DNA from: Malacoraja senta
Lineage: Eukaryota
Assembly (NCBI GenBank): GCA_038087875.1
Contig: JAXLNO010002697.1
Span: forward strand, 62,001 to 126,000
Length of the DNA: 64,000 nt
Reading direction: 5' to 3'
Of the stretch, positions 13,904 through 62,309 are shown in pieces. Position numbers and translations under genes: made by a program. The notes beneath the pieces were generated by a model, which saw only the letters and a list, made by a program, of their open reading frames with translations, was not told the DNA's origin and did no database searches. The first letter of the stretch is position 1, and every line of letters begins with the position of its first letter.

Positions 13904-16900
13904 CAGCAGTTATCACCTATGTTTGCAGCTCGTGGAGAGGAGAGGAGATCAGGCACCTGGCACAATTCCAGGAACCTGACTCCGGTTAATCCACTCAGTA
14001 AACCGCTCACTTTAACAATACTAAATTCATTTTAAAATAGTTAAGAGATAAAGAGTGAGTAGGATATGGAATCGAATACATTTGACATATATATAAATTG
14101 TAACTGGGTGAAATAGAACTGAATTGGAAACGGTAATGACCCCATAGATTTTGGGTAATAAATACAGCGGGGCTAACTTTATACCAACTACGCCGGAAGC
14201 GTTATGGATGTCGTACCCCACAGACGAGTGGGCCACTCACTACGGTGTTGAAATTTTAGACACCGTAAATTTATTTGATTTATATATATTTTTTTTAATC
14301 ACAATATGTCACATCTGTGTGTTTTTTCTTCAAGGACAATCGCGCAGGAGAACTACCAAGGAAGTCTATAATAGAAATACTCCCAAAATAACCAGAGTCC
14401 GGAGGTATGAACGCACCACAATAATTAAGGTCATTAAAATTGGTAAAAATGCATGACGACAATCAAAAGAAAATAGGAGGAATCACATTATGTAGTTGGA
14501 ATATAAGGGGGATTAATGAACCTATTAAAAGGGGCAAGATACTAGCTCAGTTGAAATCATACAACACGGACATAGCGTTTCTACAGGAAACACATCTTAA
14601 ACAGCAAGATCAGACAAGACTGAGGGCGAACTGGATAGGCCAAACATTTCACTCTTCATTTACCTCCAAATCTAGAGGTACTGCAATTATTATTCGTAAA
14701 GGAATTCCATTTAAATCAAAGAACACTATTTTAGATAAGGAAGGGAGATATCTTATAGTAGCAGGGGAGATCAATAATATGCCAATTACGCTGGTAAACA
14801 TATATGCGCCCAACTTTGATAACCCTCAATTTTTTAATAAAATTCTGAATATAATTGCAGAATCTAATTATCAAAATGTTATAATCGGAGGAGATTTTAA
14901 TTGTGTTTTAGATCCTTATTTAGATAAATCGATGCAAAAACAAAAAGGTCAGACGAAATCTAAAACCAGTGAACTCTTACACACATATATGGAAAACACA
15001 AATATAACAGATGTATGGAGGATTGCAAACCCGACGGGAAGGGATTACTCGTTTTATTCAATGGTGCATAAAACATATTCACGGATAGACTATTTTCTTG
15101 TGGATACAAAATTAATTTCGCAATCTCTGAATCCTAAATATCATATTAATGCGATCTCAGATCATTCTCCGTTAACTTTTGTTCTAAAACTAGAAGGAAT
15201 GTCTATGAATAAACCGTTCTGGAGGTTTAACTCACAAATTTTAAAAGACCCTCAAGGGAGTATCTATCTAAAAAAACAGATGGATCTATTTTTTGAGTTA
15301 AATGATACACCAGAGATATCCCCCACGTTATTATGGGAATCCTTCAAAGCATTTATAAGAGGAGTCATTATTTCATTTCAAGCTTATCAAAATAAAAAGA
15401 ATAAGAATGAACAAAGACACTTAGAAGATCAAATAAAACAGTTAGATATAGATAATGCTAAAGACCCAACTATGGATAAACATAATAAAATACTACTACT
15501 GAAATTTCAGTTAAATAAATTACTGTCAGAGAAAGTTATAACATTATTTCAAATCACAAAACAAGAACACTTCGAATTCGGGGACAAACCCCACAAACTT
15601 CTAGCACGACAACTTAAAAAACGGGAAAAAGAGAATGCAATATTAAAGATTAAATCAGATAGAGGGGAAGTATTAACACTACCCAAGGATATTAATAAAA
15701 GATTTGCTCAATTTTACCAGAATCTATACACATCTAAAACGTCAATAGACAATAATAAAATCTCAGAATTTTTAGATAATTGTAATCTACCACAATTAGA
15801 ACGCAGGGAACAAGAGGAACTGGGAGCACAAATTACTTCTAAGGAGATAGAAGACACAATAAAAACACTAAAAAATGGAAAAACACCAGGACCAGACGGA
15901 TTCAGTAATGAATTTTATAAATCTTTTTATGATATAGTTACTCCACGATTACAAAAAATGTATACATATGCTTATAAAGAGCAAAACCTACCTGAAACAC
16001 TAGCGGAATCAACGATCATATTAATACTTAAAAAAGATAAAAATATAGAAGAACCAGGATCATATAGAGCTATTGCTTTGTTAAATACGGATCAGAAAAT
16101 AATAGCAAAAACATTAGCCAATAGATTAAGCAAGTATGTTAGTAGACTAATACATGAGGATCAAACAGGATTTATACCTAAGAGACACTCATTTAATAAT
16201 TTGAGACGTTTGCTTAACATAATGCATTCACATAAATCTTATGACCAAGAGTTAGCTATCATCTCACTGGACGCAGAAAAAGCGTTTGATCAAGTAGAAT
16301 GGGACTATATGATCAAAGTATTGCAAAAATTCCAATTGGGAGAAAACTTTATTGCATGGATAAAACTACTATATAACAAACCTACGGCTAGAATACTAAC
16401 TAATAATATATTATCTTCAAAATTCGAATTATCTAGGGGCAACAGACAAGGATGTTCACTATCACCGCTGTTATTTGCTTTGGTAATTGAACCCCTTGCT
16501 GAAAAAATAAGAACACACTCGAATATTCACGGTTATAACACAAAATATTCAAACAACAAACTATCCCTATATGCTGATGATGTACTACTGTACATCACAA
16601 AACCACAAATTAGTATACCAAATATATTAAACTTAATTGAGGACTTTGGATCCTTTTCAGGATATAGAATAAATTGGAACAAAAGTGAAATTATGTCGAT
16701 TAAACCAAAAGACTCAACACATCTCAGGAAATTCCCTTTTAAAATAGCTATGGAAAAATTCAAATATTTAGGAATTGAGATTACTAGAAATTACCATGAT
16801 ATGTTTAAAGCTAATTATAATCCCCTACTTAAGAAATTAAATAATCTGATTAAATTTTGGAAAACACTTCCGATGTCCTTAATAGGTAGGATAAATGCTA

Positions 16901-18647
16901 TAAAAATGATTTTCTTACCACAAATCCTTTACCTATTTCAATCAATACCTATATATCTCCCAAAAAAGTTTTTCAAAAAACTGGACTCAGACATTACAAA
17001 TTTTATATGGGATTACAAATCCCACAGAATACAAAGAACACACCTTAACAAACGAAAAGAGTTGGGGGGTCTAGCGCTCCCTAACTTTATGTATTATAAC
17101 TGGGCAGTAAATATTAAAAATATGATTCACCTGCTGGACAATTCTGCCCAGCAGGTGGACTGGATTATAATGGAAAAAGGGGATTGCTCCCCGAATAATA
17201 TAGGAGCGATTATTCTCTCTCCAATAAATTTGAATAATAAAAATTATAATAAAAATCCAATTATATATAGCACTATTAGAACATGGAAGCAAATAAAACA
17301 GAATCTAAAATTAAGAAACCTATCTCTCTTAATACCAATAGTCAATAACCCATCGTTTAAACCTTCAATCATAGATAAAGCATTTATACAATGGGAAAGA
17401 ATGGGAATTAAAACGCTCGAAGATCTGTATGAATTAGAAAAATTACTATCATTCCAACAACTACAACTGAAATATAATTTGAAAAATAATCAATATTTTA
17501 AATATCTACAAATCTGTGACTATTTGAAAACACACACAAAAGATTATTATAATATGCCTTCCGACTTACTAGATGAAGCAATGAAGACAAAGGCGGAATC
17601 AGTTAATTTAATATCATACTTATATAATATCATCTTAAATATAGAAATACCCACAACAGATGGAATTAGAAGAGATTGGGAACAAGATCTAGGTATAAAA
17701 ATTTCAAAAGAGAGTTGGGATAATCATTTATTACAGGTGCATAAATGCTCGATCAACGTACGACATACGCTTATCCAATTTAAAACATTACATAGATTAT
17801 ATTATTCAAAAACCAAACTAAATAAAATCTTTCCTAACGTCTCACCAATCTGTGATAAATGTATATGTCAAGAAGCTACCATAGCACATTCTTTTGTTTT
17901 TTGTACAAAAATCCAAAAATTCTGGTTTGAAATATTTGATATTTTTTCAAAATTAATCAAAATAAAACTGGTACCAAAACCAGAATGGATTATTTTTGGA
18001 ATATCGGAAGGTATTCCTGAATTAAACGTGTATCAGAAGAATTTACTCAATTATGGGCTAATAATGGGAAAAAAGCTTATACTTAAATTCTGGAAAAATG
18101 CGCCCACACCAACAATAAAAATGTGGACATCAAATATGTTGGAAACATTACATCTGGAAGAGATGAGATTCCTCCTAGTAGGCAAAGTAGATCAATTTCA
18201 AAAGACGTGGTCTACGTTTTTGGACCTATTACAAGCATGAGGTGCAATAGTAATTTAGAAAAACAAATAAATAAATAAAAGGTATCTGGACCTGGTAATG
18301 GGAGGTAAAATAAAAACAGACTTGGTTGGTAGTTCCTTCTCTATGAAGTATGGTATAAGAGTTATAATAGAGCGATTGTTCCTTCTTTCTTTCTCTTTTT
18401 TTTTTCTAGGGTCTATTTTCTAACTTTACTTCCTTCTCTAACTTCTTTTCTAAGGGGCTTTCTTTTCCCAACACTCTTTTGCACTTCACAACCTTTGCGC
18501 ACTTTCTTCACTTTTCTTACTTCTTTCTTTTTCTTTCTTAAAGTTTAAAAAAGTGAAGCGGTACAAAAAATGTATTAATATATACGTGTTGTACATTACT
18601 GTAATCTACCGTACTTCTAAAAAATAAAAAAAATAAAAAAAATAAAA
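13904..18647 (+). mobile_element. L1-clade LINE, 5'-truncated, with poly(A) tail and ATAGA TSD
   Basis: TSD at 13899-13903 and 18648-18652 at a TT|ATAGA site; A-rich tail 18619-18647; T-rich 3' UTR. Confidence 0.92.
14440..18240 (+). CDS. L1 ORF2p: APE endonuclease, reverse transcriptase and C-terminal Cys-rich domain, uninterrupted (first ATG at 14449)
   Basis: SWNIRG, FLQETH, GGDFN, SRIDYF and SDHS endonuclease motifs; PGPDG, DAEKAFD, QGCSLSP and YADD RT motifs; CDKC...H...C. Confidence 0.97.
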   Translation: MVKMHDDNQKKIGGITLCSWNIRGINEPIKRGKILAQLKSYNTDIAFLQETHLKQQDQTRLRANWIGQTFHSSFTSKSRGTAIIIRKGIPFKSKNTILDKEGRYLIVAGEINNMPITLVNIYAPNFDNPQFFNKILNIIAESNYQNVIIGGDFNCVLDPYLDKSMQKQKGQTKSKTSELLHTYMENTNITDVWRIANPTGRDYSFYSMVHKTYSRIDYFLVDTKLISQSLNPKYHINAISDHSPLTFVLKLEGMSMNKPFWRFNSQILKDPQGSIYLKKQMDLFFELNDTPEISPTLLWESFKAFIRGVIISFQAYQNKKNKNEQRHLEDQIKQLDIDNAKDPTMDKHNKILLLKFQLNKLLSEKVITLFQITKQEHFEFGDKPHKLLARQLKKREKENAILKIKSDRGEVLTLPKDINKRFAQFYQNLYTSKTSIDNNKISEFLDNCNLPQLERREQEELGAQITSKEIEDTIKTLKNGKTPGPDGFSNEFYKSFYDIVTPRLQKMYTYAYKEQNLPETLAESTIILILKKDKNIEEPGSYRAIALLNTDQKIIAKTLANRLSKYVSRLIHEDQTGFIPKRHSFNNLRRLLNIMHSHKSYDQELAIISLDAEKAFDQVEWDYMIKVLQKFQLGENFIAWIKLLYNKPTARILTNNILSSKFELSRGNRQGCSLSPLLFALVIEPLAEKIRTHSNIHGYNTKYSNNKLSLYADDVLLYITKPQISIPNILNLIEDFGSFSGYRINWNKSEIMSIKPKDSTHLRKFPFKIAMEKFKYLGIEITRNYHDMFKANYNPLLKKLNNLIKFWKTLPMSLIGRINAIKMIFLPQILYLFQSIPIYLPKKFFKKLDSDITNFIWDYKSHRIQRTHLNKRKELGGLALPNFMYYNWAVNIKNMIHLLDNSAQQVDWIIMEKGDCSPNNIGAIILSPINLNNKNYNKNPIIYSTIRTWKQIKQNLKLRNLSLLIPIVNNPSFKPSIIDKAFIQWERMGIKTLEDLYELEKLLSFQQLQLKYNLKNNQYFKYLQICDYLKTHTKDYYNMPSDLLDEAMKTKAESVNLISYLYNIILNIEIPTTDGIRRDWEQDLGIKISKESWDNHLLQVHKCSINVRHTLIQFKTLHRLYYSKTKLNKIFPNVSPICDKCICQEATIAHSFVFCTKIQKFWFEIFDIFSKLIKIKLVPKPEWIIFGISEGIPELNVYQKNLLNYGLIMGKKLILKFWKNAPTPTIKMWTSNMLETLHLEEMRFLLVGKVDQFQKTWSTFLDLLQA

Positions 18648-43929: not shown

Positions 43930-44418
43930 TAGAACATAGAACAGTACAGCACAATAACAGGCCCTTTGACCCACAATGTTTGTGCCGAACATGATGCCAA
44001 GACCAATTGTTATCTGCTTGCACATAATCCATATCCATCCATACCCTGCATATACATGTGCCTATCTAAAAGTCTCTTAAATGCCACTATCATATCTGCT
44101 TCCACCACCACCCCCGGCAGCACATTCCAGTCACTCGCCACCCTTGGCGTAAAACACTTGTCCTGCACATCTTTTTTAAACTTTGCCACTCATTGCAAAG
44201 CTATACCTGCTCTTATTTGATATTTCCTTCCTGGGTAAAAAGTCAGATGGTCTACCCTATCGCTACTCCTCCCAGTTTGATATATTACTGTCAGGTCTCC
44301 CCTCAATCCCCGACATTCCAGAGAAAACAATCCAACTGCCCAGTCTGTCCAACTTCTCCCTGTGGCTAATACCCCACTAATCCAGGCATCATTCCGGTAG
44401 ACCTCCTCTGTATCCCAA
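43930..44418 (-). mobile_element. Old CR1 3' remnant overlapping the stop codon of the class I-like gene
   Basis: gatacagaggaggtctaccggaatgatgcctgg...gggcctgtt...(ctatgtt)n. Confidence 0.8.
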
Positions 44419-44618
44419 CGGAAGCTGATTGTGCTTCATGGTCACTGCAGTCCGCTGCTGGTCTCTGCTGTTGTCAGCTGGTCCCTGTTCATTGAAAGGT
44501 TTCATCTTTTTCCTCTTCTTCCAGCAACCAATTCCAAGGATGATCCCCAGGAGAATAAGAGGAACAATTACAGCTCCAGTCACGATCCTAATCTTTATAT
44601 CTTCTTTCGCTGCCATCT
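44389..44618 (-). CDS. MHC class I-like exon 5, connecting peptide, transmembrane helix and cytoplasmic tail (IVTGAVIVPLILLGIILGIGC-WKKRKK...)
   Basis: Acceptor caacag| in phase 1; about 21 hydrophobic residues followed by a basic stop-transfer cluster; open to TGA at 44389-44391. The true 3' end is uncertain. Confidence 0.8.
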
Positions 44619-44869: not shown

Positions 44870-45680
44870 AGATTCAAGATTCAAGATATTTTATTTGTCA
44901 CATTCACATACACCCGGGTGTAGTGAAGTGAAATGCTTTTTGCCATTATGCAGCACAAAAAAGAGAAGAATACAGACATCACACCAAGATAGTCTTAACA
45001 CTGAACATCCCCCCACAATGGCTCCCACCATGAGGGAAGGCACAAAGTCCAGTCCCCCACCCCAGTTCACCCATAGTTGGGCCCATTGAGGCCTCCACAG
45101 TTGCCTCTACGGAGGCCCGATGTTCCAGGCCGTTCTCGGCGGGTGATGTTGCTCCGGCGACGGGAGAGTCCTCCCAGCGGCCTGGGAACCCTGGAACGGC
45201 CGCTTCCGCACTGGGGGCCGCGGCTTCCGAAGCCAACAAGGCCGCGCCGGTTGGAGCTCCACAACTGGCGCTCTCATATAGAGATCCCAGGCTCCCGGTG
45301 TAAAGTTCAGCGCCGCTGCCCGCAGCTGGTCGCTCCACAGTCCCGCAGCCCCGCGATGTTTTCTCCAGTGATCCTCAGCTCACCGGAGCTCCAGCGCGGC
45401 GACCCGGGCAAGGCATCGCCCGCTCCGCGATAGCGCTCCAGCGCTGTGCCGCCGCCGAAGCCGAGGCTCTGGGCGGTCCCCAACAGGAAACGCCGCTCCA
45501 GGCCTGCTGGTAGGCCGCGAGGACGGGTCGAAGCTGCAGCCCAGAGAAAAGCTGCCTCTCCGGCCAGGTAGGGACCCTGAAAGGTAGTTTCCCCCTTCCC
45601 CCCCCACACAAAAAAGTCTAGACCTCCAAAACAAAACACTTTACTGACTAAAATAAAAAAGAAAGGTGAAAGGACAGACA
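44870..45680 (-). mobile_element. GC-rich non-autonomous repeat with L2-like (gaatctt)n tail; related pieces at about 34170-34500, 37050-37460 and 38541-38870
   Basis: Shared head/tail motifs and gagctcc-rich body; family unassigned. Confidence 0.45.
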
Positions 45681-45847
45681 GGTCAGCGCCCCCGGTGGTC
45701 TATTTGCAGTGTAGAGGTCAACAAGGCTATTTTCTTATGTTGACCATTGTTATTTTAGCAAATAAAAGTGAACCCATTTATAGTTGATAAAACTTCAAAG
45801 GTTTTAAACTTTGCTGATATTTAAATATCTGAGAGTTTGATATTTTC

Positions 45848-45864
45848 ACACACACGCACGCACG

Positions 45865-45896
<32 letters not shown>
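45848..45896. repeat. (CA)n/(CACG)n/(CG)n alternating purine-pyrimidine tract
   Basis: Directly visible. Confidence 0.95.
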
Positions 45897-46079
45897 GGTG
45901 CTGCTACTTCAGACTGATAATGAGGTTGGATGTGGCACCACTATTGGCCTTTTGTGCAACTAACTACTATCAAAAAAATTAGCTAGATGCCCAAGAAATA
46001 AGATAAGAGACCTTGGCCAGGATCAGCCTATCTTGCTTCCTACATTTGGATGTGTGAGTTAAGGGTGACAAGAATAATT

Positions 46080-47540: not shown

Positions 47541-47635
47541 ATGCACAGCTTAGTTAAGAGTGTGAGTTGAGGCTGTTATCTCAGTCCAGGAGGTTTATTG
47601 TCTCAAGTGTTCAGCCGCATTGACTTGCCACTTAC

Positions 47636-47911
47636 CCTGTGGAACATTGACTCCCTGCAGCAGAGTTGCATGTTCGATGTAACAGGAGAATTTTGCCACA
47701 TCTTCTCTACTCAGTTGAATTGTATTCTTCAGCTGGTAAGTCCCATCCCAATTGGGCAACAGATCATCACTGGATTCAGACTTGTGGACCCCCTCACCAT
47801 CTCTCAGCCACGTTACATCGATGGCCCGTGGCTAGAAGCCTGTGACAAGGCAGGAGAGTCTCAGTGATTGCGACCCATCACTTTTAATCCCAATAAACAC
47901 CTCAGAGGTTT
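47636..47911 (-). CDS. MHC class I-like exon 4, alpha3 Ig-C1 domain with in-frame stop (LSCLVTGF*PRAIDVTW...PNWDGTYQ...FSCYIEHATL)
   Basis: Found by manual translation; it is absent from the ORF track because of the stop. Acceptor ttgcag|, donor |gtaagt, 92 codons; C-x3-GF(Y)P, W, DGTYQ and C-x3-H motifs. Confidence 0.92.
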
Positions 47912-48726
47912 CTGCAAGTGTAAGAAGCGTCAGAATCAGTGAAGACATGAACAAAAGCCTTCAATTGTAAGATCACTGCAACTCACCACTTTCCCAATCA
48001 GAGTTTTTTCTCTGGCTGAACTAAGTTTCCAGCCTAGACCCAAAATGCTGGAATAACTCAGCAGGTCAGGCAGCATCTCTGGAGAGAAGGAATGCCCAGA
48101 GATGCTTCTGACCCACTGAGTTACGCCAACATCTTCTATCTTCAGTGTAAACCAGCATCTGCAGTTCTATCTTGCACAAGGTTTACAGCCTTTTCTCTTT
48201 TCATTTTGCATTTCTGGCAAAACAACAAAACATTTAGTTTTAATACAACTGACATGCTCCTTATCTTAGCTCCAGACTTGAACTGACAGCACAGATGAAA
48301 GGGGAATGCAGGGCCCAATGGAGGAGTATAACTCACCATTGGGATTGATACTGTAGACATGATTGCTTCTATTTGTTCATGAATCTCAGCTGAATAATAA
48401 CACTAAATATTCCAAGAGGGAATGGGAGGAAGAAGTTCTTCAACCAGAGAACTGTTGGAAATTGAATGTCACCATCCCAAGGAGTAATAGAGGCAAATAG
48501 AGAATCTGATTGGGTTTCTGATCAGCACAGCAACAGACCCTTCAGGCCACAAGGTCGGTGCTAAACATAAGACCAAGATACATATTCCTCCATTTCCTGA
48601 ATATCTATATGACTGTGGATAAAGGACACTGGTACAATATTTATCTTTCACTTGCACTTCCTACCCACTGGCTCCATCTAAGAGGCATGTTGCCAGACAA
48701 TTTACTGATACCCTCGCCCAAGAACA

Positions 48727-49018
48727 GGGTGGCGAAGCGATCGAGCTACTGCCTTACAGCGCCAGAGACCTGGGTTTGTTACTAACTACGGGTGCTTGTT
48801 TTTACACAGTTTGTACGTTCTCCCTGTGACCTGCGTGGGTTTTATCCGAGATCTTCGGTTTCCCCTCACGCTCGAAAGACGTACAAATTTGTAGGTTAAT
48901 TGGATTGGTATAAATGCAAATTGTCCCTAGTGTGTGTAGGATAGTGTTAGTGTGCGGGCATGGCTGCTCGGTGCGGTGTCGGTGGGCTTCCGAGCTGTAT
49001 CTCTAAACTAAACTAAAT
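48727..49018 (+). mobile_element. V-SINE
   Basis: tRNA-like head and (CTAAA)n tail. Confidence 0.85.
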
Positions 49019-49116
49019 AATTACTCAAGTGACAGCCTGACGTGCATGATATTTCCCACCTGATCTATCCAGAGGATATCCTCTGGCCCATCAGTCAGAG
49101 TGCCTACGTCGTGTAC

Positions 49117-49398
49117 CTCTCCTCTGTAGTGCTTCTTGTCCACACTCCAGATATATCCGCAGCCACTTCACACAGTCCTTCTCCAGGAGATCTTTAAAAT
49201 ACTTGTTCATGAAGGTGTTGACATTCCACCGATCTGCTAGCATCTGGAAATCTGGACGTAGTGCAATCCAGAACATTCTGTCCTTGTCAAAAGCACAGGC
49301 ATCCTCCCCATCATAACCCAGTCTGACAAACCCATCAGTGGAATTGTCACTGTCCACTTCACAGCCGCAGAAACCCTGCACAAAGAAAACAGCTTGGG
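49117..49398 (-). CDS. MHC class I-like exon 3, alpha2 domain (QAVFFVQGFCGCEV...GYDGED...DRW...DCVKWLRIYLECG)
   Basis: Acceptor cctcag|, donor |gtacac, 94 open codons; GC..GYDG.D..W..W..C..WL..YL signature of class I alpha2. Confidence 0.95.
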
Positions 49399-50462
49399 CT
49401 GAGGTAGGGGTGGAGGATTTGGGTTGGGGTGAGTGGATGGAAGGGAGAGGCAATTTACAAATCAGTTCTCAGCATGGTACAAACAGGCATAACAGAACAC
49501 AACATAGAGCTGTACAGCACAGGAGCAGGTTTAGTTCAGAGATACAGCGCCGAAACAGGTCCTTCGGCCCACCGAGTCCGCACTGACCAGTGGTCCCCGC
49601 ATATTAACTATCCTACACAGACTACTTTTCTTTCCAGCTTTCTCCACCCTACTCCATCACTCTAAATGGTCCTGGTCTCATATGTTTTCTGTCCATTTGT
49701 CCACAGCATGCTGCCTGACTCGTTGAGTTCCTCCTGTTTGTTTTTAATTCAGATTGGCAGCATCTGCAGTTTGCTGTGACTCCATCTTAGCACAATGGAT
49801 GATCAATGTGGATTCAGTGAGCAGAAGGGCCGGTTTCCATGATGTGTGACTCAATGACCCATGGTCTATATACTGAGGGCATGGACTAACCTCAAGTGTT
49901 GAGGGGGGAAGCTTTACTGTTGCGGATGTAACACTAAAGGAGTTCTGCTGTGTCAGAAGGGTAGAACTCAGATTCTGCACTTTCGTACATAAAGAACAGA
50001 GGAAGGAGTGCATTGTCAGATGGGCAATGTTATACAGTGAACAGGTCAGTCTCAAGGTTAAGGCAATGCAGATGGGTAGTACATCAAGGCTGTTGCACAG
50101 TGTGGGATTGCTACACTCTCTGTGGATTGCTGCCAATATTGAGGGAATGCTGGATTAACAGAATATTATTGTTGAGGGAATACATCATAGTCACCATCAA
50201 CCAGCTTAAATCAAGGTCCCATCTCTAGGTGATCAGGCTATAAATAAACTAATGGTTTCTCCCTCATTCCAGCCCAATAAAACAGATGATCCAATCCATC
50301 CACTTTTTACTGGTGTTAAATATCAAATGCTTAACCCATAAAGAGACTATCACCAGCCAACTGTTATCAATGGGTGTTCAGCAGTTAGGACACATTAAAT
50401 ATAGACGATGGGCCGTGTCTCTATCAAAATGTGATGGAGTAAATGTCTGAAACAGCATCAAT

Positions 50463-52181: not shown

Positions 52182-52442
52182 TCGAGATACCATGTTGCTG
52201 TTGGTAGACTATCTCAGCATTTCCTCTGACAATCCCATGAAAACCTGCAACTGTGATGGCCATTGAATCCCATTGATCCTGCGGGCAAGACTGGGCCATC
52301 CATCGCTGTCTGGGAATAGCCAGCTCTAGTGTGCTTTCAAAATATGCTATCTGGAGGTCATCCAGCATTGCTACCATACTGTACTCAGGCAGCTCACTCA
52401 ATCCATGGTTCAACAGGTAGTAAGATGCAAGATGGTGTAAAT
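52182..52442 (-). CDS. MHC class I-like exon 2, alpha1 domain (DLHHLASYYLL...AMLDDLQIAYFES...PRQRWM...QWDSM...HGIS)
   Basis: Acceptor ttgcag|, donor |gtaagt, 87 open codons; motifs match class I alpha1 (H-x-L start, DD-x-Q, PR-x-x-WM, W60). Confidence 0.9.
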
Positions 52443-55940: not shown

Positions 55941-56614
55941 CTTGTTTCTACATGAATAAGCAGTATTTGTTCTGTGATAAAGTTTCCATGCAGCACACCA
56001 GACAGTGTCAAAGTTCAGTGTCAAAGTGAGGTGAGAAGGGGCCCCAAAGGGAGAGTTAGAAGTGTCTGTTTCAGTGTTACCAGGAGAAACATAAGAAGGC
56101 TAGTGGAATACAGTAATGATAAAATCCACGTGACTTCCCAAAACACTCCACAACCAAGGATTTTTGTTTTATATGTTATTATTTCAACAGGGGAATCACC
56201 ATTTTATATTTACTTTCATCTGATAACAATGGGATTAAACTTTCAGGATGAGTAGGTTTGTAATCTCCAAGCCTTCACGATTGTCAGAATAGTTAGAAAG
56301 GAAGCATTGTGTGGGAAGAAATTGCTCATCAGATTCCCATTAAATCTTCCCCCCCCCCCCTCAATTTAAACCTATGTCTTCTGGTTCTCGATTCTGTAAT
56401 CTGTTGAATATGTTGCCCACTTGAAAATTTCCAGATTTAGATTGATATATTTTTGTTCATTAAGGGTGTAATGGGTTAGAGCTCAGCCACAATGTCTGTG
56501 CCGAACATGATGTCAAGTTAAACTAAACTGCTTGTACATGATTCATATCCCTCAAGTCCCTACATATCCACGTGCCTATCCTCAAGCTTCTTAAATCTCA
56601 TTATCGTCTTCTGG

Positions 56615-59497
56615 GGAAGTCGTGGATAGAGCCTGGATTGACACCTGGAAGTATGTTGTTGTGGCGATCAGTGACACATGGTTGCAGGAGGGCTGTGATT
56701 GGAAACTAAATATTCCAGGATTTCGTTGCTTCTGGTGTGATAGAATTGGAGGGTCAAGAGGTGGGGGTGTTGCATTGCTTGTCAAGGAAGATATTACAGC
56801 AGTGCTTTGGCAGGATAGAGTAGAGGGCTCGTCTAGGGAGGCTATTTGGGTGGAACTGAGAAATGGGAAAGGTGTAGCAACACATATAGGGGTGTATTAT
56901 AGACCGCCTAATGGGGAGCAAGAATTGGAAGAGCAAATATGTAAGGAGATAGCAGATATTAGTAGTAAGCACAAGGTAGTGATTGTGGGAGATTTCAATT
57001 TTCCACACTTAGACTGGGAAACACATACTGTAAAAGGGCTGGATGGTTTGGAATTTGTAAAATGTGTGCAGGATAGTTTTTTGCAGCAATACATAGAGGT
57101 ACCTACTAAAGAAGGGGCAGTGCTGGACCTCCTGTTAGGAAATGAGACAGGGCAGGTGGCGGAGGTGGGCGTTGGGGAGCACTTCGGGTCCAGTGATCAC
57201 AATACCATTAGTTTCAATATAATTATGGAGAGGATCAGAACTGGACCTAGGGTTAAAATTTTTGATTGGAGAAAGTCTAACTTTGAGGAGATGCGAAAGG
57301 ATTTAAAAGGAGTGAATTGGGACATGTTGTTTTATGGGAAGGATGTAGTAGAGAAATGGAGGACATTTAAAGGTGACATTTTAAGAGTACAGAATCTTTA
57401 TGTCCCTGTTCGGTTGAAAGGAAATAGTAAAAATTGGAAAGAGCCATGGTTTTCAAGGGAAATTGGACACTTGGTTCGGAAAAAGAGAGAGATCTACAAT
57501 AATTATTGCCAGCATGGAGTAAATGAGGTGCTTGAGGAGTGTAAAGAATGTAAAAAGAATATTAAGAAATAAATTAGAAAAGCTAAAAGAAGATATGAGG
57601 TTGCTTTTGCAAGTAAGGTGAAAGTAAATCCAAAGGGTTTCTACAGCTATATTAATAGAAAAAGGATAACAAGGAATAAAATTGGTCCATTAGAGAGTCA
57701 GAGTGGACAGCTATCTGCAGAGCCAAAAGAGATGGGGGAGATATTGAACAATTTTTTTTCTTCGGTATTCACCAAGGAGAAGGATATGGAATTATGTGAG
57801 GTAAGGGAAACAAGCAGAGTAGCAATGGAAACTATGAGATTCAAATAAGAGGAGGTGCGGACACTTTTGAAAAATATGAAAATGGATAAGTCTCCAGGTC
57901 CTGACAGGATATTTTCTAGGACAGTGAGGGAAGTTAGTGTAGAAATAGCAGGGGCTATGACAAAAATATTTCAAATGTCATTAGAAACAGGAATAGTGCC
58001 GGAGGATTGGCGTACTGCGCATGTTGTTCCGTTGTTTAAAAAGGGTTGTGAGAGTAAACAAAGCAATTATAGACCTGTTAGTTTGACGTCAGTGGTGGGC
58101 AAATTAATGGAAAGGATACTTAGAGATAATATATATAAGCATCTGGATAAGCAGGGTCTGATTAGGAACAGTCAACATGGATTTGTGCCTGGAAGGTCAT
58201 GTTTGACTAATCTTCTTGAATTTTTCGAAGAGGTTACTAGCGAAATTGATGAGGGTAAAGCAGTGGATGTTGTCTATATGGACTTCAGTAAGGCCTTTGA
58301 CAAGTTTCCTCATGGAAGGTTGGTTAAGAAGATTCAATTGTTCGGTATTAATGGTGGAGTAGCAAGATGGATTCAACAGTGGCTGAATGGGAGATGCCAG
58401 AGAGTAATGGTGGATGGCTGTTTGTCAGGTTGGAGGCCGGTGACTAGTGGGGTGCCTCAGGGGTCTGTGTTGGGTCCACTGTTGTTTGTCATGTACATCA
58501 ATGATCTGGATGATGGTGTGGAAAATTGGATTAGTAAGTATGCAGATGATACTAAGATAGGTGGTGTTGTGGATAATGAAGTAGATTTTCAAAGTCTACA
58601 GAGAGATTTAGGCCATTTGGAAGAGTGGGCTGAAAGATGGCAGATGGAGTTTAATGCTGATAAATGTGAGGTGCTACATCTCGGTAGGACAAATCAAAAT
58701 AGGACGTACATGGTAAATGGTAGCGAATTGAGGAATGCAGTTGAACAGAGGGATCTAGGAATAACTGTGCATAGTTCCCTGAAGGTGGAATCTCATGTAG
58801 ATAGTGTGGTAAAGAAAGCTTTTGGTGTGCTGGCCTTTATAAATCAGAGCATTGAATATAGAAGTTGGGATGTAATGTTAAAATTGTACAAGGCATTGGT
58901 GAGGCCAATTCTGGAGTATGGTGTACTATTTTGGTCGCCTAATTATAGGAAGGATGTCAACAAAATAGAGAGAGTACAGAGGAGATTTACTAGAATGTTG
59001 CCTGGGTTTCAGCAACTAAGTTACAGAGAAAGGTTGAACAAGTTAGGGCTTTATTCTTTGGAGCGCAGAAGGTTAAGAGGGGACTTGATAGAGGTCTTTA
59101 AAATTATGAGCGGGTTAGACAGAGTTGACGTGGATAAGCTTTTCCCATTGAGAGTAGGGAAGATTCAAACAAGGGGACATGACTTGAGAATTAAGGGACA
59201 GAAGTTTAGGGGGAACATTAGGGGGAACTTCTTTACTCAGAGAGTGGTAGCTGTGTGGAATGAGCTTCCAGTGGAAGTGGTGGAGGCAGGTTCGATTTTA
59301 TCCTTTAAAAATAGATTGGATGGGTATATGGACGGGAAAGGAATGGAAGGGTATGGTCTGGGTGCAGGTAGATGGGACTAGGGGGAAGTAAGAAGAAAGA
59401 AGGGGGAAGGAAAAAAAAAGTGTTCGGCACGGACTTGAAGGGCCGAGATGGCCTGTTTCCGTGCTGTAATGGTTATATGATTATATGGTTATATGGA
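56615..59497 (+). mobile_element. Young CR1 LINE, near-complete ORF2 with two in-frame stops (57570, 57846), antisense in intron 1
   Basis: APE motifs (GDFN, SDH) and RT motifs (GVPQGSVLGP, YADD) in one frame; (TGGTTATA)n tail. Confidence 0.95.
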
Positions 59498-60526: not shown

Positions 60527-60578
60527 CAGAGGAGACAGTGGCCACACCGTAAGTGTTGAGTAAGGTAAAAAGAAGCAT
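60527..60578 (-). CDS. MHC class I-like exon 1, signal peptide MLLFTLLNTYGVATVSS
   Basis: ATG with A at -3 (aacATG), 17 mostly hydrophobic codons ending in small residues, phase-1 donor G|GTAAGC; joins alpha1 in frame. Confidence 0.75.
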
Positions 60579-62309
60579 GTTTAACAGCCGCCCACAGCAC
60601 TATTTAACCAGGAGAGTAAATGCAGCAACAGTAACTTAATCTCTTGTACTTTTTTAACAGAACTCTGCTGTGAAGCTAATTATTGGTCCATGTGTACACA
60701 AACCTGATAACAATGGGAATGAGACCACTTGTTCTGGTCACTAATTACCAGTGAATACAGTTTAAGGATCAGGTTTTATGGTAGGGATTATATTGGTGTT
60801 TTAAGGACAACAATTACAAAATCATATTTCACATAGCATCTTACAACCGAATAGATGTTTCTCAAAGTATAACTATTTTACAATTCAGAATGCAGTCAAT
60901 TCCACAAACTGCAGTTTTAGATAAACCAGATAGTCTACTTTACTGTGTAGGAAGGAACTGCAGATGCTTGTTTTACTGTAGGCAGATGCAAAAAGCTGGA
61001 GTAACTCAGCGGGTCAGGCAGCATTTCTGGGGGAAAGGAGTAGGTGACATTTCGGGAAGGGTCTCGACACAAATCGTCACCTTTTCCTTTTTCCCAGAAG
61101 TGCTGCCTGACCTGCTGAGTTACTCCATCTTTTTAGAAGCATAGAAAATAGGTGCAGGAGGAGGCCATTCAGCCCTTGGAGCCAGCACCGCCATTCATGG
61201 TGATCATGGCTGATCGTCCCCAATGAATGCCTGCCTTCTCCCCATATCCCTTGATTCCACCAGCCCCTAGAGCTCCATCTAACATTTTTGTGTCTGTCTT
61301 TAGTCCACTTTACTGTTATTGCTTAAGTAATAAAAATTGGACAATGCATGTGTAATAATTTCCCAGCCCTTATTTGAGGTAATACCATGCGTCTTTTTTT
61401 TCAGCTGGGAGGAGAGACATGAGCTCAGTTTAAAGTTGTGTCTAGGTGTAAACGTGCAGCACAGTCTCAACATCAGTGCAGAAATCTCTCATTGAGCCTT
61501 CTATTAATACATGGCCCTTTACACCATGTCCCACTCACCTGAAAACTATGCTCTCCATTACTTTCCACCCTGTGGAAAAGTTTCTGACTCTCTATCCCAT
61601 CTATGCCTCTCATAGTTTTATATACTTTTATCAACCTCCAGCATTCTAGCGATTACAATCTAAGTCTGTCCAACCTCTCCTTCTAGCTAATATCTAATCT
61701 GTGCATCATTCTGGCAAACCACCTCTGCACTAATTCCATGCTTCCAAATTCATCCTGCATTGGGGCAACTAGAAATGCCGATAATATTCTAAAAGTCGCC
61801 TATCTGAAGTTCTATTCTCCGACCAGTCTGACTGCCCCCCTGATTAAAAATTATCTGTCTGCTTCGTTCACACCCTCTCCTAGCTAACAATGATCTATTC
61901 TACATTTTCCTTGAACTACATCTCCTTTGATGTCATTCTTTCATACCTTACACTTCCTTATCTCCATGTCTCCTTTTCCTCTTCAGCCTGAAGGGACTCA
62001 ACCAGAAATGTCACCCATTCCTTCTATCCAGAGATGCTGCCTGTCCCGCTGAGTTACTCCAGCATTTTGTGTCTATCTTTGAAGTTCCATAAAGCAGCAT
62101 ATGACTTCCTGACTCTTATACTCAATGCTATGAATAGTGGCTTCTTTACCACTCTGGCTTTCAATTGATTGAAGGCGGAAAGGACCCAAACAATTATACA
62201 GCAAAAATCTTAGTGGTGGGACTGGAACAGAATTTTTTTTTTAAAGCAATAAAATCAAGGATATTGTTCATAAAAAAGTAAAATATTTATTGTCCCGGTA
62301 TGGCAGGAC

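Follow-up and report, generated by a model that had tools for sequence, protein, structure and literature searches.

A probable non-processed pseudogene in a nonclassical MHC class I lineage of elasmobranchs

Structure of the class I locus

The window (the whole 64,000-nucleotide stretch of Malacoraja senta DNA that was analysed, in whose numbering all positions without a prefix are given) contains an MHC class I gene on the minus strand, with five exons between an ATG at 60578 and a TGA at the end of exon 5 (Table 1). No second class I gene was found in the 64-kb window. Three loci were used for comparison: L001 and L002 from the little skate Leucoraja erinacea, and L003 from the sawfish. All introns of the window gene are GT-AG and lie in phase 1, and the spliced frame has no frameshift and is open apart from one in-frame TAG. 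The original prediction, made from the letters of the window, had described intact splice sites and phase 1 introns; the five-exon model agrees, and the cores of its splice sites are the same as in the intact little-skate copy L001.

The leader exon is identical to L001:100-151 at 51 of 52 nt and 90% identical to the sawfish leader, and the leader peptide agrees with those of the orthologues from Heptranchias and Pristiophorus. The most likely start of the alpha2 exon, placed by homology to the intact skate gene and to the sawfish, is 49398; the alternative start at 49392 would give an exon of 276 nt, and both starts are in frame. The donor of this exon (G/gtacac) is weak and is identical in L001. 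The alpha2 exon contains a strong-looking acceptor (ttttctttgtgcag/G) 22 nt from its start, the use of which would shift the frame. Since the intact skate copy and the sawfish have an identical site, it was rejected as a lesion, and it is evidently tolerated or unused. The cytoplasmic tail is seven codons longer than that of the sawfish. Its LINE-derived end is also found in L001 (L001:22150-22177), and a LINE insertion as a tail lesion of the window copy was ruled out because the intact skate copy has it in common.

Upstream of the ATG, we observed a CCAAT box (ggaccaataatt) at ~105 nt and an A-rich TATA-like run (ttaaaaaagt) at ~65 nt, in a region that aligns with the sequence upstream of the leader in L001. 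The remainder of the window is mostly transposon-derived. It includes an uninterrupted LINE ORF2 of 1271 codons with endonuclease (PF03372) and reverse-transcriptase (PF00078) domains, which may belong to a young, possibly active retrotransposon, and a second LINE in class I intron 1, antisense to the gene, with its endonuclease and reverse transcriptase in two open stretches. Intron 4 holds a GC-rich stretch with several open frames across both strands and no Pfam match, followed by a (CA)n/(GCAC)n microsatellite.

Table 1 Features of the class I locus and of the rest of the window (a slash marks a splice junction)
Feature	Position	Strand	Remarks
LINE ORF2	14425-18237	+	1271 codons
Exon 5, connecting peptide, TM and cytoplasmic tail	44389..44618	-	TGA at 44391-44389
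Tail end	44389..44410	-	last ~6 codons and stop within LINE-like repeat fragment (self-BLAST)
GC-rich stretch, intron 4	44980-45700		
Microsatellite, intron 4	~45850-45900		
Exon 4, alpha3 C1-set Ig domain	47636..47911	-	276 nt, phase 1 at both ends
GAT GAT, one codon a private insertion	47763..47768	-	SSDDLL here; SSDLL or SSGVL in all others
In-frame TAG	47834-47832	-	
Exon 3, alpha2 domain	49117..49398	-	282 nt; acceptor ctacctcag/CC; Pfam MHC_I match
Strong-looking acceptor in exon 3	49376-49392	-	
Exon 2, alpha1 domain	52182..52442	-	261 nt; PDB 9ch4_A match
Private alpha1 replacements	F24S 52425-52423; F70C 52287-52285; H74Q 52275-52273; D53E; V60I	-	invariant-site test
Second LINE, intron 1	56595-59378	+	antisense to the gene
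Exon 1, ATG and 17-residue leader	60527..60578	-	donor CTG/gtaagc, phase 1
CCAAT box and TATA-like run	60640-60700	-	

A stop codon in the alpha3 exon

On the minus strand, exon 4 reads ...ACA GGC TTC TAG CCA CGG..., with an in-frame TAG in place of the tyrosine of the alpha3 GFYP motif. That GGC TTC TAG CCA replaces this conserved tyrosine (47832-47834) was the starting point of the original prediction, and both the minus-strand reading and the alignment bear it out. The same codon is TAC in L001, the closest copy, and a single C-to-G change of its third base (plus-strand base 47832) gives TAG. The tyrosine is unchanged in all other aligned sequences of the lineage (12 of 12), and the TAG is private to the window copy among the fetched sequences (L001, L002, and the sawfish L003).

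An ORF through all domains is absent, and the TAG would end the product at residue 224 of 366. The piece of exon 4 beyond the stop matches the C1-set family (PF07654, E 2.2e-8), and the alpha3 exon holds LSCLV, DVTW, and FSCYIEH, which contain the Cys pair and the C-strand Trp of a C1-set domain. The exon begins after a good, pyrimidine-rich CAG acceptor (...cacttgcag/AA at 47911) and ends at a donor (CAG G/gtaagt at 47636) whose CAG/GTAAGT agrees with the U1 consensus at 9 of 9 positions. Within the exon, 77 nt separate the TAG from one end and 198 nt from the other. Its distance to the last exon junction is 196-198 nt, close to the ~200 nt given at the outset and far enough for nonsense-mediated decay (NMD) under the exon-junction rule.

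The stop had been described as the only lesion in the five exons. This holds for stops and frameshifts, but the window copy also carries six private replacements at invariant sites, a private L185R change, and the extra GAT codon in alpha3.

A nonclassical lineage sister to shark UGA

The alpha2 exon matched the Pfam MHC_I family (PF00129) at E 2.1e-16. The alpha1 exon matched it at E 1.1e-3, below the family cut-off, and matched PDB 9ch4_A at E 1.5e-20. When 1.8 billion representative proteins were searched with alpha2, a single near-identical match was found (L. erinacea XP_055486430.1, 95% identical). This protein, used in turn as query, returned one protein per species from sawfish, manta, stingray, and eight sharks (54-72% identity), whereas all other class I lineages in the same search reached ≤36% identity. 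The C1-set domain is carried by every lineage protein that was returned (13 of 13).

In the phylogenetic tree, the 12 lineage sequences, which come from 11 species, form one clade (SH-aLRT 100). Its branching reflects the shark/batoid split, with support of 97 for the batoid clade and 100 for the pairing of the window copy with L001. The lineage is sister to the UGA-like protein (support 99) and lies outside it, in a tree that held one UGA-type sequence only. The predicted model of a shark orthologue (108 sequences, pLDDT 92), used solely to find the nearest solved structure, came closest to PDB 9CH4 (Z 29.5, rmsd 1.6 Å, 41% identity), the PDB title of which is 'shark nonclassical MHC class I, UGA'; a first model built from 12 sequences was poor (pLDDT 53) and was discarded. 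In sharks and rays, UGA and UFA are described as CD1-like genes that bind lipids and occur in one or a few copies (PMC12562908). Veríssimo et al. (2023) list the sawfish orthologue (LOC127585976) only as 'MHC-Ib', next to other MHC-Ib entries.

Classical anchors were scored by BLASTP of the shark orthologue against one classical-type sequence. The residues Y7, Y59, Y/R84, T143, K146, W147, Y159, and Y171 correspond to F7, H59, Q84, L143, R146, W147, L159, and Y171 in the lineage, which keeps two of the eight peptide-terminus anchors (W147 and Y171). Because the other six are lost, the lineage is nonclassical, and it probably does not present peptides. The window copy is changed further at two anchors (S7 and Q59). 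From these sequence comparisons, the lineage is an old nonclassical class I gene of elasmobranchs, sister to shark UGA.

In one annotated isoform of the lineage, Chiloscyllium plagiosum X2, alpha2 runs straight into ...GFYP...; this implies an acceptor inside alpha3 and removal of the first ~22 residues of the domain. An isoform of this type would not bypass the skate TAG.

Copies of the gene in skates

The intact little-skate copy L001 (L. erinacea scaffold JAMYXN010000384.1, gene model XP_055486430.1) belongs to the same lineage as the window gene, has the same five-exon layout, and is collinear with it in both introns and flanks. At the nucleotide level, the two are 85-94% identical by segment, 90-98% in exons, and 90.8% over the aligned stretch, and they have the leader, the splice-site cores, and the LINE-derived tail end in common. 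Unlike the window copy, L001 has TAC at the stop codon, is without the extra GAT codon, and keeps all of the 116 invariant positions examined below. With canonical splicing, it has a fully open ORF of 365 codons.

The public model XP_055486430.1 looks wrong at two places. It omits the leader exon (L001:100-151, 10 kb further upstream), and it runs 13 codons into intron 3 (L001:12702-13040), joining at a non-canonical AT...AG site that starts with ATATCCTC. If this reading were applied to the window, a TGA would fall in the extended alpha2 exon. Such a second lesion was rejected because the canonical ...QRR/ site is the one used in the sawfish and in all sharks, and because the canonical donor opens the L001 frame and the ATATCC motif is missing in the sawfish.

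The second little-skate copy, L002 (L. erinacea scaffold JAMYXN010000412.1, gene model XP_055486496.1; ~91% identical to the window), is a disabled skate copy of the same lineage, as is the window gene. The lesions differ between the two: in L002, which is plainly dead, the Cys164 codon of alpha2 is replaced by a stop and alpha3 has lost one codon, and the GFYP tyrosine is kept. No alpha1 match was found in the fetched L002 locus.

In a three-way alignment of the skate copies (47578-50350), the private branches of L001 and L002 (5-7%) are about twice the length of that of the window copy (~2.8%), and the distance between L001 and L002 (12%) is greater than the distance of either to the window (9%), a pattern that is not clock-like. 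Local differences in mutation rate, repeated gene conversion, or less accurate unplaced scaffolds are possible sources of these branch lengths. A mosaic or gene-conversion origin of the short window branch was considered, and no block pattern was found.

Loss of constraint in the window copy

Either skate copy has a dN/dS of 0.26-0.27 against the sawfish, whereas that of the window copy against L001 is 0.77, and 0.92 in the mature ectodomain. Using the sawfish to polarise changes, we assigned 19 nonsynonymous and 6 synonymous changes to the window branch, for which the neutral expectation is 78% nonsynonymous. Long-term constraint is rejected for this branch (P=0.004), on a small count of 25 polarised changes. 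The branch leading to L001 is somewhat relaxed too (16N:7S). The strongest excess of private replacements in the window copy is in alpha1 (7N:1S).

We examined 116 columns that do not vary among at least eight other orthologues. Seven of them are changed in the window copy only (F24S, D53E, V60I, F70C, H74Q, P201S, and Y225stop) and none in L001 only (p=0.016). F24 and H74 are the equivalents of the classical pocket residues Tyr7 and Tyr59 (BLASTP). In mature numbering, F24S, F70C, and H74Q are F7S, F53C, and H57Q.

The rates of exons and introns were compared by counting private substitutions in the alpha2 and alpha3 exons and in their flanking introns in the three-way skate-copy alignment. 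The exon/intron ratio is 0.90 (not significant) for the window copy, 0.41 (p=0.001) for L001, and 0.71 (not significant) for L002. About 4% of random substitutions in the ORF create a stop, which gives an expectation of 1.0-1.1 stops in 26 changes. Decay is modest, with no frameshift and one in-frame indel in 1.1 kb. The picture from these counts is of a copy that would have drifted without selection through its whole private history, which, on a rough clock scaled on the skate-sawfish dS, may cover tens of millions of years.

Interpretation of the disabled copy

In our view, the window gene is, with a probability of about 0.8, a non-processed pseudogene (or null copy) derived from a nonclassical MHC class I gene of elasmobranchs that is sister to shark UGA. 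It combines a disabling mutation with retained introns and exon structure and with neutral evolution, as is characteristic of non-processed pseudogenes. A pseudogene or null allele had been the fallback of the original prediction, and the stop, the neutral N:S ratio, the exon/intron ratio of 0.90, and the departures at invariant sites now support it. Two further descriptions did not survive the same comparisons: the alpha3 exon and the gene are not otherwise intact, given the neutral N:S ratio, the equal exon and intron rates, and the invariant-site departures, and evolution of a neutral type over the entire private branch contradicts a very recent pseudogene.

Since the split from its nearest relative, the exons of this copy would have changed at a neutral rate and in a neutral pattern, and one stop is about what drift predicts. 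A C-to-G change would have turned the invariant GFYP tyrosine codon into TAG, with the loss of constraint coming before the stop or alongside it. Because the rates are neutral and invariant sites have changed, constraint seems to have been lost long before the stop, or independently of it. A spliced transcript, if there is any, would carry the stop ~197 nt before the last exon junction and is a predicted NMD target, and any protein would end after 224 residues, without most of the Ig domain, its second cysteine, and the membrane anchor. The function of the lineage would be carried elsewhere, since an intact and still constrained relative exists in the little skate.

The pseudogene reading has to be weighed against other explanations of the same codon. 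A recent null allele that segregates at an otherwise functional locus, with a young TAG and intact alleles in other individuals, would account for the single disabling mutation and for the retained splice sites, leader, and both disulfide cysteine pairs, provided that the other private changes were tolerated or reflect adaptive divergence of a duplicate; old, divergent haplotypes are known in MHC regions (PMC10751288). We regard it as unlikely, given that exon and intron rates are equal along the whole private branch, that N:S is neutral, and that seven invariant residues have changed against none in L001, including the equivalents of pocket residues 7 and 59. An error of assembly or base calling, with TAC as the true codon, is less probable by some distance. 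The difference from the nearest relative is indeed one base, but the loss of constraint in this copy is independent of base 47832. Substitution errors at a given base are also rare in polished long-read assemblies. Read-through of the UAG to a full-length protein, in which near-cognate decoding can insert Tyr, is the most improbable of the readings considered here. C is the leakiest +4 context after a stop in eukaryotes and is the base that follows the window TAG, but the downstream CCA CGG does not fit known read-through motifs (CARYYA; UGA-CUAG), the basal rate of read-through is at most ~1%, the bulk of the mRNA would be lost to NMD, and neutral evolution argues against any retained function.

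The original prediction had favoured a different outcome, in which skipping of exon 4 gives an EPCR-like alpha1-alpha2-TM protein. The exon 3-exon 5 join that it requires (AGA G/AG ATG) was checked and is in frame and open, as had been claimed. However, MHC class I and Ig-superfamily genes usually have symmetric phase-1 domain exons, and introns are all phase 1 in all three genes that we modelled. This symmetry is generic; an in-frame skip is therefore not special to the window locus and gives no evidence for skipping. A class I platform that evolved together with alpha3 and beta2-microglobulin usually misfolds in their absence, which also counts against such a product. Nonsense-associated exon skipping does exist, at an estimated 5-30% of nonsense mutations, and acts mostly through the loss of exonic enhancers (PMC8464065). 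Against it stand the perfect donor and the pyrimidine-rich CAG acceptor of exon 4, both unchanged from the intact copy, and the position of the TAG well inside the exon. Moreover, all 13 lineage proteins keep the C1-set domain, an alpha3-less annotated isoform is absent among them, and alpha1, which the skipped product would need, carries damaging-looking changes (7N:1S; F7S, F53C, and H57Q). The EPCR-like product is thus unsupported, and an alpha1-alpha2-TM protein with the EPCR/ULBP domain layout, made by constitutive skipping or by nonsense-associated altered splicing, is a shade less credible even than a base error. The same very low probability applies to the specific proposal that the TAG copy is still expressed and that exon 4 is skipped owing to the nonsense codon, giving a beta2-microglobulin-independent molecule. 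If true, it would be a live example of alpha3-less receptors (EPCR, ULBPs) arising from a full class I gene.

A tidy gene with one stop tempts one to tell a functional story, and simple comparative tests indicate a drifting dead copy instead. The intact little-skate copy (XP_055486430.1) is the one to choose for functional work.

Comparison with known systems

EPCR (PROCR) and ULBP/RAET1 share an alpha1-alpha2-anchor layout only with the hypothetical exon-4-skipped product. No alpha3 exon is known in the EPCR and ULBP/RAET1 genes, whose platforms fold independently of beta2-microglobulin; the window gene, by contrast, has an alpha3 exon with consensus splice sites. The list of 60 PDB sequence matches to the alpha2 exon did not include EPCR. 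Shark UGA (PDB 9CH4), nonclassical and CD1-like, is the closest solved structure and has the AGFHG motif of the alpha1 helix in common with the lineage, yet it represents a sister lineage and not the same gene, the 12-sequence clade excluding the UGA-like protein.

Class I families produce pseudogenes by birth-and-death evolution, for example HLA-H, -J, -K, and -L. Like these, the window copy would be a duplicated gene that kept its exon structure, was disabled by point mutation, and drifted neutrally near working relatives. Its lineage, unlike that of the HLA pseudogenes, is one of elasmobranchs, and outside skates the search gave a single annotated protein for each species. There were 11 such shark and ray species, whereas skates have at least three diverged copies of the lineage, of which only one looks alive. 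In skates, a nonclassical lineage that is stable elsewhere has gone through a minor episode of birth-and-death evolution.
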